A stretch of DNA of 9,209 bases from Octopus sinensis (GCF_006345805.1 NW_021828014.1:1-9209), one strand, 5' to 3'; shown: positions 1 through 9,209, counted from the stretch's first letter. Numbers and translations are program-made. The notes: a model not told the origin generated them from the letters alone.

Positions 1-109
1 ATAATAATAATAATATGTCTACAGATCGCAGCTGATATATTGGAAAGGGGCAAAATAAGGGACAGAAAACTAGAACTACATGCACGATACATATAATAAA
101 GCCTCCCAA

Positions 110-420
110 AATCATGGTGGAAAATATCTCATCAGCATTGCCCAAATGATGTTGGCATCAGCTTTAAGATATACCCAAGGCCTGGGCCCCGTATTATCTG
201 TCACAACATAATCAAACTCGCATCACATAACAACAATACGGCAAAATTATTTCACCTCAAGTGGCCCCGGTCCATTTAGCATTACACAAAATACATTAAA
301 GCAGAAAAAGACCCCCATAAGTTCAAGAAGTATTTGGAAAAATCCTTCAAGAAATCCCGATAAAACTCCAACACCAGGATATGTCCCCGTAAACAGCAAC
401 TCTCCCTCCTCGAGTGGGTC
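110..420 (+). mobile_element. Degenerate 3' end of a non-LTR retrotransposon ORF2 (CR1/L2-group-like LINE), frameshifted
   Basis: Frameshifted peptides read WKISHQHCPNDVGISFKIYPRPGPR (118-192), HHITTIRQNYFTSSGP (221-268), KFKKYLEK, PDKTPTPGYVPVNSNS (356-403) and LLEW (406-417). This fits the FKxxLDxFLxxIPDxP...GY...NSL C-terminal pattern of CR1-group LINEs. The clade call is from remembered motif pattern. 421-502 may be its 3' UTR. Confidence 0.65.
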
Positions 421-499
421 ATGTTGTCCGCATCCTGATTCGCCCGGTAGTGGGGATTACGTTAAACATGACCTGCGCTAATGCTGGCGCGACCTATCA

Positions 500-502
<3 letters not shown>

Positions 503-538
<36 letters not shown>
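503..538. repeat. (AT)n microsatellite
   Basis: Uninterrupted AT dinucleotide run directly visible. Confidence 0.98.
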
Positions 539-1633: not shown

Positions 1634-1771
1634 ATGTTTGTTGTGCAGAAATAAAGAGGCCACAACAAAGTTCATCCCTGTGAACACCTTCTGACATGTG
1701 AAGAATGTTCAAACGTTCCACTTAACGATGCCTGAGGTGTTTGAAACCTGTAACAAGCAGAGGTCGAGTTG
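1634..1771 (+). CDS. Exon encoding a C3HC4 RING finger (Mind bomb/IAP-like RING-HC E3 ligase); two 1-bp deletions as written
   Basis: Acceptor TTCTGTTTGTCCACAG| (AG 1632-1633) and donor TTG|GTAAGA (1772). Correcting single-base gaps at about 1674-1678 and 1724-1725 gives CLLCRNKEATTKF(I/H)PCEHLLTCEECSNVPL(K)RCLRCLKPVTSRGRV. All eight ligands are present in the pattern C-x2-C, P-C-x-H, C-x2-C, C-x2-C. Confidence 0.8.
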
Positions 1772-2091
1772 GTAAGAATATTCTTTGCTGATCTGTCTGT
1801 TTGTCCTGCTTGTCCCATTGCCCTTATTGTGTAGAATAATATACTTCATGTTGTTATGTAGACAGAGGTCTGCCATAATCTGGCAGATTTATGATAAAAG
1901 GGTGTTCCTAGTGTCTGTTCTCTGTAATAGTATATCTCTCACACTACATCCACTAAACATTGACCTTATCCAAGTAGGAAACATGTCACACTTCAAGAGG
2001 GTTGTAGTCTGCAACATAAAGATAATGGACGATTCTGCAAGATAATTAGTGAGTAACTGAAGTATCAATAAATCTCCATCAACTCTATAAT

Positions 2092-2139
2092 TAATTATGA
2101 GTTATTAGAAGATAATTATGAGTTATTAGAAGATAATTA
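2092..2139. repeat. 21-bp tandem duplication (2.3 copies)
   Basis: TAATTATGAGTTATTAGAAGA twice (2092-2112, 2113-2133) plus TAATTA. Confidence 0.95.
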
Positions 2140-2875
2140 AATACAACAGTACTTACAAGGACATCTGTGTCATCTTTGGCAAAGTATTAAATTCAGTAGA
2201 ATATTTTAAAGGAGTAAAATTATATGTCACTAGTTTGAGAGACTTTAACACACAATTCCATGTTGTTATGTTTGTAATTGGAGGGTATTAAGGCTAATAG
2301 AGACAGTTTTGTTTGTCAAGCAACCAGATCATGAAACCTTCAAATATATCCTGAATGAGGTGACATTCTGGTGAACTGTGAAGTTAAAATTAGGGATTAT
2401 CAGCAACAATGTTTAACAAAAAGATTAGGTGTATGTATTACCTTCTTGAAGTGGTTGTGACATGTGTTTGTTGTTATATCTTTGATGAATAAATATGTTG
2501 ACACTGGAATTAAACAGGTTGTTAGTGAAGATCAGGGTTTTGAGAATACATTTAGGGTCATAGATATAAGCAAGGAAACCAAAACCTACAGATTAACTGT
2601 TATTATGTGATATAATTACAGCATTGTTAGATTATGTAGGATATCTTAACAGAAAGAGGAAATTTACAAAGATCAACTAGAGTTCGTTTTGGAGCTAAAT
2701 ATTGGCTATTACATGGGTCCACTGTTGAAAGTATAAAAATATTGACCAAAAGCATTATGATCGCTGGTTGGCCATTGATGATATGAATGTCTCTCAATAA
2801 TAAAATATAGATTATTAATAAATATAAAGGGATTGTGCTATAAATAAATATAAAACTTGGAGACACATATTTCAG

Positions 2876-2920
2876 AGAGTCCAAAGTTTGAAGAGAAGGG
2901 AGTGCAGACTGTGGCAGAGA
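2876..2920 (+). pseudogene. Mini-exon A (45 nt), (E)SPKFEEKGVQTVAE; splice donor defective as written
   Basis: Acceptor ATATTTCAG| (2875) is homologous to those of exons B and C. The donor position reads A|TGAGTTTGAAATTA, where the paralogues have G|GTGAGTATAAAATAA. Restoring one G gives a phase-1/1 exon. Confidence 0.65.
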
Positions 2921-3247
2921 TGAGTTTGAAATTAGAGATCTTAATTAATTTCTATAGATTTTACATTCACCTCAGCTATTTTGCTTATTAGAATGGTGGA
3001 GAACAAATCCCATTTCTAATTTCCATTTGAAAGGTTAGCTCTAAAGTAATTGTATTAAAAATATTACTGAAATTTCATAAAGTCATGTTTAACATGTTTG
3101 GTCAAATGGATAAATTAAAAGCCACAATAGAGTTAATATTGTCTTCTATGGAACTATAATTATGTTTTTTTTTGGTGTAAACTCGTGAGTTAATAAAATA
3201 GTTGTTTGTTTTTCTACTAAGATTTTTCGTAAGTTTTCTGATAGGTT

Positions 3248-4898
3248 ATTCTTGATGTTGTTATGTAGCCAGATGTCTGTCGTAATATTTTGTATTTTCT
3301 GGGGTTGTGTACCCTGAATGTCTCTGGTTAGAATACATTTGTAGTTGCAAATTAGAAAATTCTAATTAAATGTTAACTCTGTATAAGAATATTCATCATG
3401 AACTTAATTTTATTAAATGTTAAATTTAGTATTGAACCGTGAACATCTGTTTATATTTAAACAAATTATTGGTGTTTATACAAAATATACAATCAGAAAT
3501 TGAATATGACTTGAATACACAAATCCTTGATTGTAACTATGTATAATATACACTTATTACATTGTTTGGACAGCATTTACCATCCATATAGTCATTCTTT
3601 TTCTCACTCTTGTTAGATTTTAGATGATATTAATGCTAAAAGAGGCACAATTTTCTGAATGTTTCACCCTCTGGTCTTGATTGTTGCGTTCAAATTATTT
3701 AATGAAAGATAGTCATTGTTATTTGACCAGGAAATGAATTAATCATTGGTATTTGGCAGTGGACTTGGTTATATCTTTCTTCGTTTGCTCATGGAACTAC
3801 CATAATATTAGCTGTGCTGAGACACAATCATATTCATAGTAATGAAGGTTATATGTTCTTTACTCAGATTATATACAATCTATATTGATATCTAGTATTG
3901 CACCGTCAAGCACATTGCCATTGAATCACATATATACCCAATTATCATGATAATTAATAAGCTATAATTCATTAACTCTCTTACATTTGTATGTCTGAAA
4001 TGTAAACTTATTTTGCCATAGGAACATCGTGTACCCTCACCTTACATTTTATATCTTGTTAGGGATCATGTTGGGGAAGGGTGTATGGAATTTGGCTTGT
4101 GCAGATGTTTTTTAGGGGACAGATTGTGTGCGGAGTGGAGGGTATACACATAAAGGACATGTCTTTATGGGCTCAGTTTCACTTAATTAGAGAGGAATGT
4201 TGATTAGTGAATTCTAGAGATGAGAAGACTGTGCCATGCCATAGATTTGGCACAGTTATAAGAAAAGAAAGACAAAGCTAAGAGAAAACTGTCATCAAGT
4301 GTTAATTTTAATGAGATAATTGCTACATTGTTAGAATATTTAATGTGTTTCTAGAGAGAGAGAGGGTGGATTTAGAGATGTTAGTCTGTTTTATTGTGGA
4401 CATATTCTGTAGAAAGTACAGAAATATTGACCAAAACCATAATGGTCAACAGTTGACCAGCAACGACAGGAATTGAATGTCTCACAATAACAAGATAGAT
4501 TTTAATAAAAATAAAGATAAATAAATTCTACAATTAAATGTAAAACTTGTAAATGTTTATTTCAGCGTCTCCAAAGTTTGCAGACAAGGGAGTGCAAACA
4601 GATTTACAATTATTAGAGCCTACATCCGAGCAAAGTGGTGAGTATAAAATAACATTTCCCAATTGATTTCTATAAGATTTAATTTACCTGGGTATATTGT
4701 GTTTGAAAGAATAACTGAAAATAGGATCCACTCCTACTTTCCAATTGAACGATTATCTGAATTATCTGAACGATTAATTGAATAAAAGATATCGATTTAC
4801 TGAGAGTTTATGAAATACCCATTGAGGTTAATGCTGTTGGTAATAATGTTCAAATTAGAAGACACAATAGAGTTAATTTTATCATTTGGTCACAGACC
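3248..4898 (+). repeat. Tandem segmental unit 2 (intron + mini-exon B); boundaries approximate
   Basis: Exact 42-mer CATTTACCATCCATATAGTCATTCTTTTTCTCACTCTTGTTA (3574-3615 = 5442-5483). 3413-3697 aligns by eye with 5268-5575. 4190-4720 aligns with 2520-3000 and 8660-9160. Confidence 0.85.
4566..4637 (+). CDS. Mini-exon B (72 nt, phase 1/1), (A)SPKFADKGVQTDLQLLEPTSEQS
   Basis: Acceptor TTTATTTCAG| (4565) and consensus donor G|GTGAGT (4638). Length is divisible by 3, with no stop in the frame continuing from the RING exon. Confidence 0.8.
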
Positions 4899-5190
4899 TC
4901 ATCATCATCATCATCATCATCGTTTAACGTCCGTTTTTATAGTAGCATGGGTCGGACGATTTCACTGGAGAGGCAGTAGGCTGCGCCAGGATCCAATGTG
5001 ATCTGGCAAGGTTTCCACATATGTATGCCATTCCTAATACCAACCACTCAGAGAGTGTGGTGGGTGCTCTTTACGTGCCACCGACACAGGAACCAGTTGA
5101 GGTTGGGGCTGGCATTGACACCGTTCGGATGGTGCTTTTTACTTTCCCCCGGCACAGGGAACCAGCCAGGCGGAACTGGCAACAAACCAC
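4899..5190 (-). mobile_element. 5'-truncated RTE-type retroposon 3' UTR with (GAT)n tail and two about 68-bp internal repeats
   Basis: (TCA)n at 4899-4921, with the same tail-proximal sequence as 931-988. Internal imperfect repeats start with GGTGCT at 5063 and 5131 (GGTGCT..TTAC......CCG.CACAGG.AACCAG...CTGGCA). The GC-richer block interrupts otherwise homologous intron sequence. RTE assignment is from memory of octopus repeats. Confidence 0.8.
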
Positions 5191-5575
5191 TGAATAACAT
5201 TGTTATAAATTAAAAGGATTAAAAATCAAATCTCTAAGATTATAAGTATAATGATCGTTAACGTTGATTAAATATTAAATTTAGTATTGAACTGTGAACA
5301 TCTGTTTACATTTAAACAAAATATTGGTGTTGACATAAAATATAAAGATAGAAATTAAATATGAGTTCCCTGTGTGACTTGATCTCACAAATCCTTGTTT
5401 GTAATTATATATAATATACACTTACTACATTGTTTGAACAACATTTACCATCCATATAGTCATTCTTTTTCTCACTCTTGTTACATTTTAGATGATATTA
5501 ATGCTAAAAGAGGCACAGTTTTCTGAGTGTTTCACCTCTGGTTTTAGTTCTGACTTGATTGTTGCATTCAAATTT
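5191..5575 (+). repeat. Tandem segmental unit 3, left part
   Basis: Close direct-repeat match to about 3330-3697, including the 42-mer at 5442-5483. Homology stops abruptly at about 5575. Confidence 0.85.
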
Positions 5576-5589
5576 GACTACTCCCACAG

Positions 5590-5875
5590 CTGTTGTCATC
5601 CTTTGTCAGGTTCAACTTCTTATTTCCTTCAATTTGGATCTTCTGGCACTTCTTTATCCACATTTTTTAAATCCCCCATACTCATCCCATATCTGTACCA
5701 TCTCGTCTTTTGTGCGCTATCTCTGAATCTTCTAAACCCTAGTTTTGCTTCCAGCTCATCTCTGCTCCGGGACTTCAGCACATTAATATTACACTTCTTC
5801 TGAAGTATGCTCACTTCATTTTTTAACAGTTTTCATACATCCTCTATACTCTGTGAAACATTCCACTTTACAAAT
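5590..5875 (-). mobile_element. Old, highly decayed RTE-clade LINE ORF2 C-terminal fragment
   Basis: Minus-strand translation gives EDV*KLLKNEVSILQKKCNINVLKSRSRDELEAKLGFRRFRDSAQKTRWYRYGMSM, then after a shift WIKKCQKIQIEG. It is colinear with the + strand element's QDMRRLERDEACMIRWMCNVSV...KLGIRSIKCGVQERRLCWYGHVLRM...VMKCHSLTVEG. Confidence 0.7.
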
Positions 5876-5883
5876 ACACATCA

Positions 5884-6900
5884 GGGTTCACTAACGATCA
5901 GTCCTCAGCCCGCTCTTATTCCTTATAGTCCTCCAGGCAATAACAGGGAAATTCCAAGACAGGCTGCCCCTGGGAGCTCCTCTGTGCTGATGACCTCGGT
6001 CTAATAGTTGAGTCAATGCCAGAACTGGAGACAAAGTTTGGGGTGTGGAAGCAAGGTCTAGAATCGAAGGGCCTTAGAGTTAACCTAGTCAAAACCAAAG
6101 TCCTTGTAAGTAGGAAGGCTGTTAAATCACAACCCCTTTCAGGTAGATGGCCCTGCTCTATCTGTAGAAATGGAGAGGGTAGAAACTCCACACGATGTAA
6201 CCGGAGGAAGCTTTGGACACATAAAAGGTGCAGCAATATCAAAGAAAGTTAACCAGGAAAATAGTTTTTGTGTGTGGCAAATGCTCTGGGGCAATAAACA
6301 CTGAAAGTGTACAGAAAACAGATTCCATCACATGCCAGGGGAAGAAACTAGAAGTAGTTAATAGCTTCTGCTACCTAGGGGTTCAAGACTGTAGTGAGTG
6401 TGATTGCTCTGCGAATGTAGCGACTAGAGTAAGAATAGCCTGGGCAAAGTTGAGGGAGCTCCTACCTCTGCTGGCAACTAAAGGTATATCGCTCAGGGTG
6501 AAAGGTAGACTGCATGATGCATGTGTGCGAACAGCCATGTTACAGGGCAGGGAAACATGGGCCATGGGTGCTCAGGACATGCGTAGGCTTGAAAGAGATG
6601 AAGCTTGTATGATTCGCTGGATGTGTAACGTCAGTGTGCAATCACGACAAAGTTGGGCATAAGAAGCATCAAATGTGGTGTGCAAGAGAGGCGACTGTGC
6701 TGGTATGGTCATGTGTTACGTATGAATGAAGACAGCTGTGTGATGAAGTGCCACTCCCTCACTGTAGAAGGAACCTGTAGAAGAGGTAGACCCAGGAAGA
6801 CATGGGATGAGGTGATGAAGTATGACCTTCAAACATTGGCCTCACAATGGCAATAACAGGAAACCGGGATCTTGGGAGATACGCTTAGATTGAGAAAACC
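5884..6900 (+). mobile_element. RTE-clade non-LTR retrotransposon ORF2 fragment (RT C-terminal half + PHD-like Zn finger), inactive
   Basis: VH*RSVLSPLLFLIVLQAIT (the QGSVLSP motif, with stop TAA at 5892-5894). WELLCADDL is the YADD motif mutated to CADD (5983-5994). Also GLRVNLVKTK, FCYLG, ETW, RWMC, WYGHVLRM and RGRPRKTW. Frameshifts at about 5955, 6247, 6650 and 6838. No 5' portion or 3' tail is attached. Confidence 0.93.
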
Positions 6901-7019
6901 CCCTAGTGAATTCACCCACACACTGTTGGGGTGTATGCGCAGTAGTCCTCTAAATCCAAAATATTGACACCCATCAATACAGTAAGCATTTTGCATTCAC
7001 TTTTACTCCGTATTTTGGT

Positions 7020-8545
7020 GACATTGAATATAAATTTCGAAGAGGCACCAATGCGCATTCGTTAACCTTTGTGCCAGTAATTTGGTCACGGAAATAATTT
7101 ACTGGAACCTTTGATGTAAGTGCTCATATGGTGCGGAAATCACAGCAACTGAGCAAAGAAGAGGCTATTTTGGCTCATCCTGACCCAAGGAAAGGTACGT
7201 CCCGGGACGTCAGAATCGGAGGAATATTCACGTGTTTGTCCAGCTAAAAAGGAAATTGTTACTGTAATTGAGAACGGATTAAAAGTCCACCGACTAAAAT
7301 AGCCATTGCTTGTGAATCTTCAGAAATAGTTTTGTGTGGATTACAAGGAAAACGCTGGATATAATAAGGTAGATTTTTGTAAGTTTTATGAATTGCAACT
7401 GAAATGAACGGATAATACAATTGTATGAGTCGGAGGAATATTCGCTTCTTTGTGACTTGCAACCAAAATGCTGTGTTCAAGTTACTACCTCAGGCACGCA
7501 TTCTGTATGTGTCTGTGAGAATCACCAACATGCAAAACGTATCGCCGCTGCCATTCCTGGTAGTCATGACTACACAGACTTGCTTGGCAAAATGGTCTCT
7601 TCCGTGAGCAATCGAGATTGTATGTTGCTCCTATGTGAGTCCTGTCCTTTTGAACAACGTTTATTAGACGTATTTTAATCACTTGGAGGTTTAGTAACGC
7701 ACAAACAGTTGGCACATGTGGACTGGTCAGCTCCTCCTTTATGACTCACTTCCCCAGTGAATGCCTTCATTCAAACCGCTGAAAGTGTGTTTGAATCTCT
7801 ACAACAACATCATTTCATAGCAGAGGCCCGATCTTGTTTCCTTAATCATCAAAAAGATGACCTGACATCAAGTGAAGCAATAGTATTGTTGGACTTTACA
7901 GAAAATTACAGCTTTGTAGTACAGGACGCCCTGCAAGGGTTTCATCGGAACAAATTCCAGTAAAATATTCATCCATTCGTGATTTACTATAAGACTGGTT
8001 CAAACCCACAATGCACTTCAATCTGTGTCATATCGGATTGTTTGAAACGTGACAACCACATTGTGCATGCTTTTATTACGAGGGTGATATCGCATATAAA
8101 GACAGAACTTCCATTCATAAACCATCTCCTGTACTTCAGTGACGGTGCAGCCGACCAATACAAGAACTAGAGACACCAAACAAATCTCTGTCATCATCAG
8201 AATGATCAAGGACTTGCAGTAGAGTGGCATTTTTCTCCATGTCATGTGCAAAAAAGTCTACAAGTAGCCACAGAAAGACATTTTCTCACGGATCCCAAGG
8301 TGTGTAGCTGAGTATGTGCAAGCATTCCAGGAATAATGTTCTTTTACGTCCGAAACGAAAACAGTAGAACAGTGAAATTAATTGGCACAAGATCCCATCA
8401 CTGCTTCATTCTTTCTTCAAGATCTGATCTTCTAATGAAAAGAATATCAGCCGATGACAATTTCACTCTTTTAGGTGAGGAGCAGCCAGCATCTGAGCTG
8501 CATATTTCAAAGTTACAACCCTGAAAATATGTTGGATACACGAAT
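7020..8545 (+). mobile_element. Fossil cut-and-paste DNA transposase, Sola2-like
   Basis: Colinear fragments: WSRK*...PDPRKG, ESEEYSRVCPAKKE...ELQLK, SGTHSVCVCENHQ, CMLLLCESCP, LLDFTENYSFVVQDALQGFH (D at 7892), IHPFVIYY, ISDCLKRD, YFSDGAADQYKN (D at 8141), EWHF and GTRSHHCF. It carries multiple stops and deletions, and the expected HGKxxxD third acidic motif is missing. The Sola2 label is from remembered motifs. No TIRs were found. Confidence 0.8.
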
Positions 8546-8548
8546 GAA

Positions 8549-9209
8549 AATGTTTAACAAAGAGATCAAGTGAGCAGGTTTATTCTACGTGAAGTGTCTG
8601 TCATGTGTTTATGGTAAGATCATTGATGACCAAACTGGTTGCCATCGGAATTAAGCAAAGATGAGAATAATGTTGGTTAGAGAAGGGCAGAAGTGAGGGC
8701 ACAATTTCACGTCATATGTTTAGTGCAGATATAAGAAAGGAAAGACAAACCTAATAAAAGATTGGTGTTATCAAGTGATAATTAAATGAAATAATGACAC
8801 AGTTGTTAGATTATGTCGAATGTCTCAAAAGATAAAGGAAATTTTGGAAGACTGTAAATATTAAACTATTAAATAGTAATCCTGTTCAAACTATAAACAT
8901 TCTAACCAAAATTATTGTCTTCAACAGTTGATTATGTATGAAAAGAATCCCTGATATAAAATATAGATTATTAATAAAGATGGAGAAATTTTTCTATAAT
9001 GTTTGAAACTTGGAAATATTTATTTCAGTGAATCGAACATTTGAAGTCAAGGAAACACAGACATTGGCTGAACCTGTTGGTGAGTATAAAATAACAGCAC
9101 TTGATTGATTTCTGTAAGGTTTATCCCCTGCTGAACTATTTTGATATCAGAATGATAAAGATCAGCTTCCATTCTTACCTGTCAATGGGAAGTTTTAGCA
9201 TTAAACTAA
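8549..9209 (+). repeat. Tandem segmental unit 3, right part (runs off window end)
   Basis: Homology to unit 1 resumes at AATGTTTAACAAA (8549 vs 2408). AGATATAAG.AAGGAAA..AAACCTA is shared with about 2552-2588. GGTGAGTATAAAATAACA is identical at 9079-9096 and 4637-4654. Confidence 0.85.
9029..9079 (+). CDS. Mini-exon C (51 nt, phase 1/1), (V)NRTFEVKETQTLAEPV
   Basis: Acceptor TTTATTTCAG| (9028) and donor G|GTGAGT (9080). Length is divisible by 3 and the frame is open and continuous with exon B. Confidence 0.8.

Follow-up and report, generated by a model that had tools for sequence, protein, structure and literature searches.

What does a RING-type exon followed by a series of very short paralogous exons encode in an octopus genome, and could those short exons be docking sites for the LC8/DYNLL dimer? 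We addressed this question in a 9,209-bp stretch of DNA (hereafter the window), which is the entire unplaced contig C4485 of the Octopus sinensis genome (2.72 Gb in 13,516 contigs), and for which a sequence-only reading had proposed a ligase whose post-RING linker gained LC8-binding motifs by exon duplication. The window covers part of one paralogue, from the intron ahead of the RING exon as far as the second exon of the linker; the family concerned is restricted to Octopus and was amplified recently. On structure the earlier proposal is right, with its essentials already present in RefSeq models, while the window's own copy is damaged or mis-assembled and one of its three short exons is dead. 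LC8 binding by the linker units, as predicted from their motif, is plausible but partial.

The exon structure is read from both the window and a sister contig, C4534. On the plus strand, cassette mini-exon B (72 nt, phase 1-1, positions 4566–4637) encodes (A)SPKFADKGVQTDLQLLEPTSEQS and cassette mini-exon C (51 nt, phase 1-1, positions 9029–9079) encodes (V)NRTFEVKETQTLAEPV; each is bordered by an AG acceptor and a GTGAGT donor and is used in NCBI models. C4534 carries one such model, P0023, which is spliced RING-B-C with A skipped and reads ...CLKCLKPVTSRGRV-ASPKFADKGVQTDLQLLEPTSEQS-VNRTFEVKETQTLAEPV-(two further C-type units), so that the RING-B-C product foreseen from the window is matched letter for letter. 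A peptide identical to B is spliced after the RING in both P0023 (O. sinensis) and P0026 (O. vulgaris), and a unit identical to C occurs once or twice in each of P0011, P0023, P0024 and P0025. Three symmetric mini-exons had been expected; this holds for B and C, whereas A (2876–2919, plus strand, ESPKFEEKGVQTVAE) has an intact acceptor but has lost its donor, with AT at 2920–2921, and its phase is broken by a 7-nt deletion in the window copy. The A donor position reads G/ATGAGT in the 29 aligned copies, the window's included (one reads G/TTGAGT), with no GT donor, and models P0023 and P0006 skip this exon. A is a dead, decayed exon, and B and C are genuine mini-exons of the family. A profile of the unit run over six frames of the entire window found no unit beyond these three. 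Nor are the exons unannotated, since RefSeq models already splice them.

All three units are embedded in tandemly duplicated intron sequence on the plus strand, in which repeat families D3, D4, D5, D7 and D8 are present in three copies each at spacings of ~1690 and 4463 nt. This confirms tandem exon duplication, one motif per exon, after a RING-type exon, and the duplicated units are not due to chance. Because the recurrence of the motif is itself a consequence of duplication, the three copies do not count as independent evidence.

Across the family, the linker array consists of tandemly duplicated phase 1-1 mini-exons of 12–26 codons each. Where annotated isoforms come from the same gene, they differ by precisely one unit (17, 18 or 24 residues) or by a pair of units (35 residues), and the rest of the linker is identical; the NCBI pipeline derives alternative isoforms from transcript evidence. 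On a 50,486-bp contig, one O. sinensis gene (P0045, P0190–P0202) has 14 listed isoforms, X9–X22, that differ only in which zero to two of at least four linker units they include. Among these units one carries VQT and the others VKTV, so splicing could switch the anchor on or off. Across 24 recent copies of the main unit, we additionally compared variation in the exon and its splice sites with that in the flanking introns. The mean pairwise difference per site was 0.031 in the exon and splice sites versus 0.054–0.058 in the introns, and variable columns numbered 14 of 78 in the exon versus 242 of 730 in the introns (p = 0.007). The units are very probably real coding cassette exons.

The protein to which these exons belong is visible in RefSeq models from O. 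sinensis, O. vulgaris and O. bimaculoides, which run from RING to units to death domain in one frame; P0026 from O. vulgaris, for example, has the RING, then a unit identical to B, then the death domain. Fuller models consist of ankyrin repeats, one zf-C3HC4_3 RING, zero to five cassette units and a C-terminal death domain. A protein search with the ankyrin, RING and unit regions as query found 22 proteins, 21 of them Octopus RefSeq or GenBank models, the exception (P0022) being a true MIB2 from a fly. In the 21 family proteins Pfam matched only Ank, RING (zf-C3HC4_3) and Death: PF13920 scores near or above its cut-off, and PF00531 reaches 33.5 bits in P0005 and 27.7 bits in P0006 against a cut-off of 22.6, the death-domain exon lying off the window contig. 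The linker leads to a C-terminal death domain instead of the second, terminal RING that had been anticipated downstream.

This architecture also revises the identity of the ligase. The sequence-only reading had called it Mind bomb/IAP-like, and the likeness ends at ankyrin repeats plus a zf-C3HC4_3 RING. The Mind bomb domains PF06701, PF00569 and PF18346 are in no family protein and only in the dipteran P0022, and Pfam finds no MIB/HERC2, ZZ or BIR domain in the family proteins. Mind bomb (MIB1/MIB2) identity was rejected on the lack of MIB/HERC2, ZZ and Mind-bomb repeats and on the presence of one RING only, and IAP (BIRC) identity on the lack of a BIR domain in every family protein. Database names such as ‘E3 ubiquitin-protein ligase MIB1/MIB2-like’ and ‘ankyrin-1-like’ are carried by the models, and the Mind bomb names arise from ankyrin plus RING alone, with no other Mind bomb domain present.

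Structure prediction gives a consistent picture of the regions around the linker. AlphaFold2 (AF2) models of P0024 and P0026 contain the RING, the linker and a C-terminal helical bundle, with the bundle at a predicted local distance difference test score (pLDDT) >80, and in P0024 the C-terminal domain is predicted as six helices at pLDDT 81–91. Foldseek places this domain among the death domains of ankyrin-G, RAIDD, FADD, TRADD and RIPK1, closest to that of ankyrin-G (template modelling score 0.77, root-mean-square deviation 1.4 Å), and it places the model RING with those of XIAP, cIAP and IDOL. The post-RING linker had been expected to be disordered and not folded or coiled-coil, and it is indeed predicted to be so, at pLDDT <50 and without secondary structure in residues 114–187 of P0024 and 214–245 of P0026, the latter containing B.

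We next turn to the window's own RING exon, which lies at 1634–1771 on the plus strand (acceptor AG 1632–1633, donor GT 1772–1773) and is of the C3HC4, zf-C3HC4_3 type. In intact copies the exon reads CLLCRNKEATTKVHPCEHLLTCEECSNVPLKRCLRCLKPVTSRGRV and its end is in phase 1, as had been claimed for the window; what did not stand is that the window exon is a single open frame. As assembled it is 138 nt long versus 140 nt in intact paralogues, and compared with 99%-identical paralogues it is without one A in the run at 1667–1669 and one A in the run at 1724–1725. The frame read from the acceptor hits a premature TGA at 1692–1694, and the eight zinc ligands of a RING-HC (C-x2-C...C-x-H...C-x2-C...C-x2-C) do not fall in one open frame in the window as assembled. 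The RING peptide given in the sequence-only reading needs three frames, and its ‘FIP’ is a frameshift artefact at a place where intact copies read ...TTKVHPCEHLL....

Whether this damage is real matters for the window copy alone. The two frame-breaking deletions with their premature TGA, together with the additional 7-nt deletion in pseudo-exon A, are what a true pseudogene fragment with real frameshifts would carry, and no protein attributable to the window contig appeared in the two protein searches. Decay is also common in the family, with nine of 30 sampled RING-exon copies broken and 21 open. However, eight of those nine breaks are small indels and only one is a nonsense substitution, and with indels ignored all eight zinc ligands are retained in 28 of the 30 copies. 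The 301 nt around the window's RING exon depart from the nearest paralogues at four places, each the loss of one nucleotide from a homopolymer run, without a single substitution, a pattern that resembles long-read consensus error at homopolymers in poorly polished repeats. The window frameshifts are possibly assembly errors masking a working gene, and we regard a true pseudogene as possible but somewhat doubtful.

Two side observations concern the reading frame of this exon. Read-through of the RING donor at window positions 1772–1792 would add only GKNILC and then reach TGA, and therefore a short RING-terminal isoform with an IAP-type ending is possible in intact paralogues. The O. vulgaris model P0020, in which leucine-rich repeats are fused to the ankyrin part, ends in ...MFVVQK and a stop, which is the RING exon in the wrong frame (ATG TTT GTT GTG CAG AAA TAA); some annotated family models are therefore mis-spliced or chimeric.

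The family to which the window belongs is numerous. The RING exon has at least 92 candidate genomic places, with scored matches 73–99% identical, and the mini-exon unit at least 226, with scored matches 84–97% identical, introns included; both are first-look counts and thus lower bounds. Small unplaced contigs carry many of the copies, and clusters are found on C27 and C29. When 1.84 billion representatives were searched exhaustively with phmmer, 347 matches were returned, from which 30 representatives were checked for their source. All those with a RING plus units or a death domain came from O. sinensis, O. vulgaris or O. bimaculoides, and the non-octopus matches checked had single domains only, though absence from other cephalopods may mirror database content. 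Judged from these sequences, the family is Octopus-restricted and recently amplified. A literature search found no paper on the family, nor one on MIB-like or death-domain ligases with LC8 motifs; the earlier reading likewise knew of no description of such a system, although RefSeq models exist.

We then asked how well the units resemble LC8 sites. The LC8 consensus is [D/S]-4 K-3 x-2 [T/V/I]-1 Q0 [T/V]+1 [D/E]+2 (PMC3078936), and the flank rules call for a polar residue at -4, a large one at -3, no bulky aromatic at -2 and D, E or P, not a hydrophobic residue, at +2 (PMC6607443, section 9). Sixty unique units of 17 residues were aligned from their exon starts with no gaps, and 23 representatives sharing at most 10 of 17 residues were chosen. 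In this set of 23 unit types conservation is highest at Q0 (3.64 bits), followed by P-8 (3.0), K-3 and V-1 (2.77 each) and T+1 (2.61), while position +2 is mostly V across the aligned units. The core follows the pattern [DE]-[KR]-x-[VT]-Q-T, with K-x-V-Q-T as its most conserved form, and it is retained in O. bimaculoides units whose flanks differ.

Within the window, both B (GVQT) and C (ETQT) have the anchor [T/V/I]-Q-[T/V] with Q at 0. The best LC8-type site of the window is ADKGVQTD in B, whose candidate peptide is ASPKFADKGVQTDLQ; this site and that of the main family unit (EDRCVQTE, peptide APKFEDRCVQTEAT) match the LC8 consensus (PMC3078936) and fit all flank rules. Mini-exon C (EVKETQTL) has a KETQT core, but the rules disfavour both its V at -4 and its L at +2 (PMC6607443), and A fails at +2. 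We scored the sites with a position-specific scoring matrix built from 79 published binders and 32 anchor-bearing non-binders, for which the medians are 18.2 and 8.0, respectively. B scores 22.9, above all 32 non-binders and at the 91st percentile of binders, and the main family unit, with 18.5, ranks at percentile 57 among binders and 97 among non-binders; the prediction of LC8-competent peptides is thus supported for these two, whereas C (9.7) is ambiguous and A (EEKGVQTV, 5.3) is poor. The validated binder ZFPM1 (SDKGVQTP) contains the DKGVQT of B, and gephyrin (EDKGVQCE) its DKGVQ. Sites scoring at least 18.5 occur at 5.9e-3 per residue in linkers versus 1.2e-4 in shuffled linkers (~50-fold), and the strict consensus is matched in 9 linkers versus 0.0 expected from shuffles.

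The putative partner is present in the same genome in several forms. The O. sinensis genome has at least nine full-length Dynein_light (LC8-family) matches without an internal stop, plus several more copies with stops. Seven were translated (loci L062–L068: C25:12066054-12066305; C8597:280489-280740; C8459:191318-191569 and 193825-194076; and one each on C12460, C11947 and C9567), and all are uninterrupted open reading frames (ORFs) of 89–90 aa. The set comprises one canonical LC8, three other LC8-type paralogues of 89 aa, two of which form a tandem pair with a spacing of 2.5 kb, and a divergent group of 90 aa, several of the paralogues being intronless; the sequence at C25:12066054-12066305 is an octopus LC8 ORF. 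LC8 paralogues may have expanded alongside the motif-bearing family.

The explanation that we consider best overall combines this family structure with an LC8-docking linker, and we hold it tentatively, a little short of even confidence. The conserved core of the unit would be the docking site for the LC8/DYNLL dimer, which would bind one strand from each of two ligases and zip the two linkers together, in register, directly after the RING; the Q of unit B sits 21 residues past the last RING cysteine. Dimerisation of the RINGs would be favoured by such zipping and the death domains would be clustered in advance, and how many LC8 sites there are, and how good, would depend on exon number together with alternative splicing. 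Competent-looking units are only B, EDRCVQTE (the main unit), KDKETQTQ and EDKCVQTE, and the others would be spacers or serve another role. Peptide B would probably bind LC8 in vitro. The docking mechanism as a whole is possible, leaning towards doubtful, and a linker that acts in vivo as a multivalent LC8 strip controlling dimerisation lies somewhere between unlikely and possible. That the duplicated cassette exons make up a splice-programmable strip, in which the choice between QT-bearing and QT-less units sets RING dimerisation and death-domain pre-clustering, maybe alongside the expansion of LC8 paralogues, seems unlikely. For some units, B above all, the functional reading makes a reasonable hypothesis, but it does not extend to the whole family.

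A number of observations weigh against LC8 docking, beginning with the window copy, which cannot encode a protein as assembled. The QT motif that had been expected throughout the array is found in part of it: 31 of the 60 unique units fit the loose pattern [KR]x[TVIS]Q[TV] and only 5 the strict consensus, others having VKTV, VQAV or SQRV at the anchor, and whole sub-arrays with K at 0 (VKTV) or A at +1 (VQAV) are still spliced as cassettes. In the family consensus PKSEEK-x-VQTVAE, position -4 is E and position +2 is V, both disfavoured (PMC6607443), and such units score in the non-binder range, as do about half of the unit types (EEKAVQTV, REKTVKTV, EDKAVQAV, KGKASQRV and similar). The scores themselves come from a simplified LC8Pred-style rebuild with a leave-one-out area under the receiver operating characteristic curve of 0.83, and the published LC8Pred is ~78% accurate. 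P-8 and K-7 are conserved though they lie outside the LC8 8-mer. Finally, in the 24 recent copies of the main unit protein-level constraint was not shown, with 12 non-synonymous and 2 synonymous changes versus ~3 synonymous under neutrality, and the Q or T is lost in 4 of these copies.

Alternatively, the units could be only a variable-length disordered spacer between the RING and the death domain, in which K-x-V-Q-T reflects common descent, perhaps with exonic splicing signals, and the likeness to LC8 sites is coincidental. The amplification is recent, with copies 84–99% identical including their introns, the coding changes fit neutrality with Q or T lost in 4 of 24 copies, about half of the unit types score as non-binders, and some family members (P0010 and P0019) carry no unit at all. 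A spacer would leave unexplained, however, why Q0 is the top conserved column in 23 divergent unit types and why K-x-V-Q-T is kept in O. bimaculoides despite differing flanks, and both the strict-consensus matches absent from shuffled linkers and the lower variability of exon and splice sites than of introns argue against it; we consider it rather unlikely. The core could instead be a motif or strand for a partner other than LC8, such as a death-domain signalling partner, a self-associating RHIM-like strand or, in the CPxC sub-arrays, zinc knuckles. The conservation of P-8 and K-7 and the retention of spliced VKTV and VQAV units with a broken LC8 anchor are consistent with such a role, as are the K-at-0 units that carry CPKC or CPRC every 17 residues. 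By their position, with a catalytic module on one side and a death domain on the other, the units recall RIPK1, where a RHIM precedes the death domain. Yet the RHIM core [IV]Q[IVLC]G, the TRAF2/3 motif PxQx[TS] and the TRAF6 motif PxExx[FYWDE] each occur 0 times in 61 linkers, the TRAF2 major motif [PSAT]x[QE]E is not significantly enriched in them (36 versus 26 ± 5 in shuffles), and AF2 gives no structure in the two modelled linkers (P0024 and P0026). We think a different partner quite improbable.

Other patterns in the units were inspected as well. Clusters of S/T-Q showed a mild enrichment that is accounted for by the TQT and SQT variants and were rejected as a candidate, and inspection by eye for LC3-interacting region (LIR) and KFERQ-like patterns found none common to the unit types. 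The units that begin CPKC or CPRC are in the linkers of P0036, P0031 and P0045, where their repetition every 17 residues gives C-x2-C-x13-C-x2-C across neighbours; this spacing is typical of small zinc-binding knuckles, and these units have K, not Q, at the anchor. In the main family unit (RCVQTEATC), two cysteines are spaced by seven residues.

The remainder of the window is intron and repeat, all described on the plus strand. Its wider paralogue context was taken from one 10-kb stretch (L061) and 3.3-kb loci. Positions 1–1633 are the 3′ part of the intron that runs from the last ankyrin exon, off the contig, to the RING exon, as seen by alignment to contig C11333 at 96% identity (window 1–538 to L061 6036–6577, and 882–4356 to L061 6544–10000). 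In C11333, ankyrin-repeat exons at L061 3110–3448 and 5017–5196 lie upstream of an intact paralogous RING exon. Within the window's pre-RING intron are (TA)n runs at about 500–540 and 835–925 and an element resembling a short interspersed element (SINE) at about 931–1200. A further SINE-like element with an (ATC)n head (4895–5200, repeat family D9, identified by copy number) is intronic and part of the duplicated unit. This element has at least 5,824 first-look candidates genome-wide, and the best-scoring copies listed sit a few hundred nucleotides 3′ of family mini-exons, so the element was duplicated along with the exon unit. ARAGORN found no transfer RNA (tRNA) in the window or its SINE-like elements.

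The intron between B and C holds a dispersed-repeat fragment at 5900–6860 (and about 6900–8550), recognised by copy number, and the long spacing from B to C is partly due to this insert. The 5900–6860 portion has at least 12,916 first-look candidates at 80–86% identity on many chromosomes. The insert is common to the sister contig (C4534:29358-30314, 95% identity) and was therefore in place before the two contigs diverged. Pfam had no match in the ORFs of this intron (5944–8524). With no Pfam match and no tRNA, the window repeats are reported only as dispersed repeats, on copy number.

Comparison with known systems helps to place the linker. Multivalent LC8 partners such as ASCIZ/ATMIN, Nup159, KANK1 and GKAP have a disordered segment with serial, uneven sites at which LC8 dimers are proposed to zip two chains together in register (PMC5963919, PMC10046861, bioRxiv 10.1101/2025.07.16.665182). 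The octopus linker likewise has serial LC8-type sites of uneven quality in predicted disorder. It differs in that its anchor is mostly VQT and not TQT, that LC8 binding is here a prediction from the motif, that each site is on its own phase 1-1 cassette exon with the set varied by annotated isoforms, and that the host is a RING and death-domain protein and not a transcription factor, nucleoporin or scaffold.

The octopus family resembles Mind bomb 1/2, the source of its RefSeq names, in having ankyrin repeats and then a zf-C3HC4_3 RING. It is unlike them in having no MIB/HERC2, ZZ or SH3-repeat domains, in having a single RING that is not C-terminal, and in the addition of a death domain. The nearest solved RING folds to the octopus RING model are those of XIAP, cIAP1/2 and IDOL, and IAP/IDOL-type RINGs work as dimers. 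In IAPs the RING ends the protein and the tail takes part in the dimer, whereas in the octopus family, which has no BIR or FERM domain, the chain continues past the RING into the linker. Like RIPK1 and ankyrin-G/B, the octopus proteins have a disordered segment with a short interaction motif that connects a C-terminal death domain to a module of enzymatic or scaffold type; unlike RIPK1 (kinase, RHIM, death domain) they have no kinase and no RHIM tetrad in the 61 linkers, and unlike ankyrin-G/B they have no ZU5-UPA module. A functional tie between ligases and death-domain signalling has been described for MIB2, which acts through RIPK1 and cFLIP (PMC5912950, PMC7815719).

Even without LC8, the family is a clear case of exons and genes amplified very recently in octopus, with a new domain arrangement of ankyrin repeats, RING, cassette linker and death domain with combinatorial cassette exons, which has been hidden in databases under the misleading names ‘MIB1/MIB2-like’, ‘ankyrin-3-like’ and ‘PP6 regulatory subunit’. 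If the LC8 reading is true, the number of LC8 sites would be encoded one per exon and varied by alternative splicing, an arrangement for which we know of no earlier case, and LC8 would be tied to a RING ligase bearing a death domain. This would offer a simple way to tune ligase dimerisation in a lineage-specific family, perhaps one acting in immunity or cell death.

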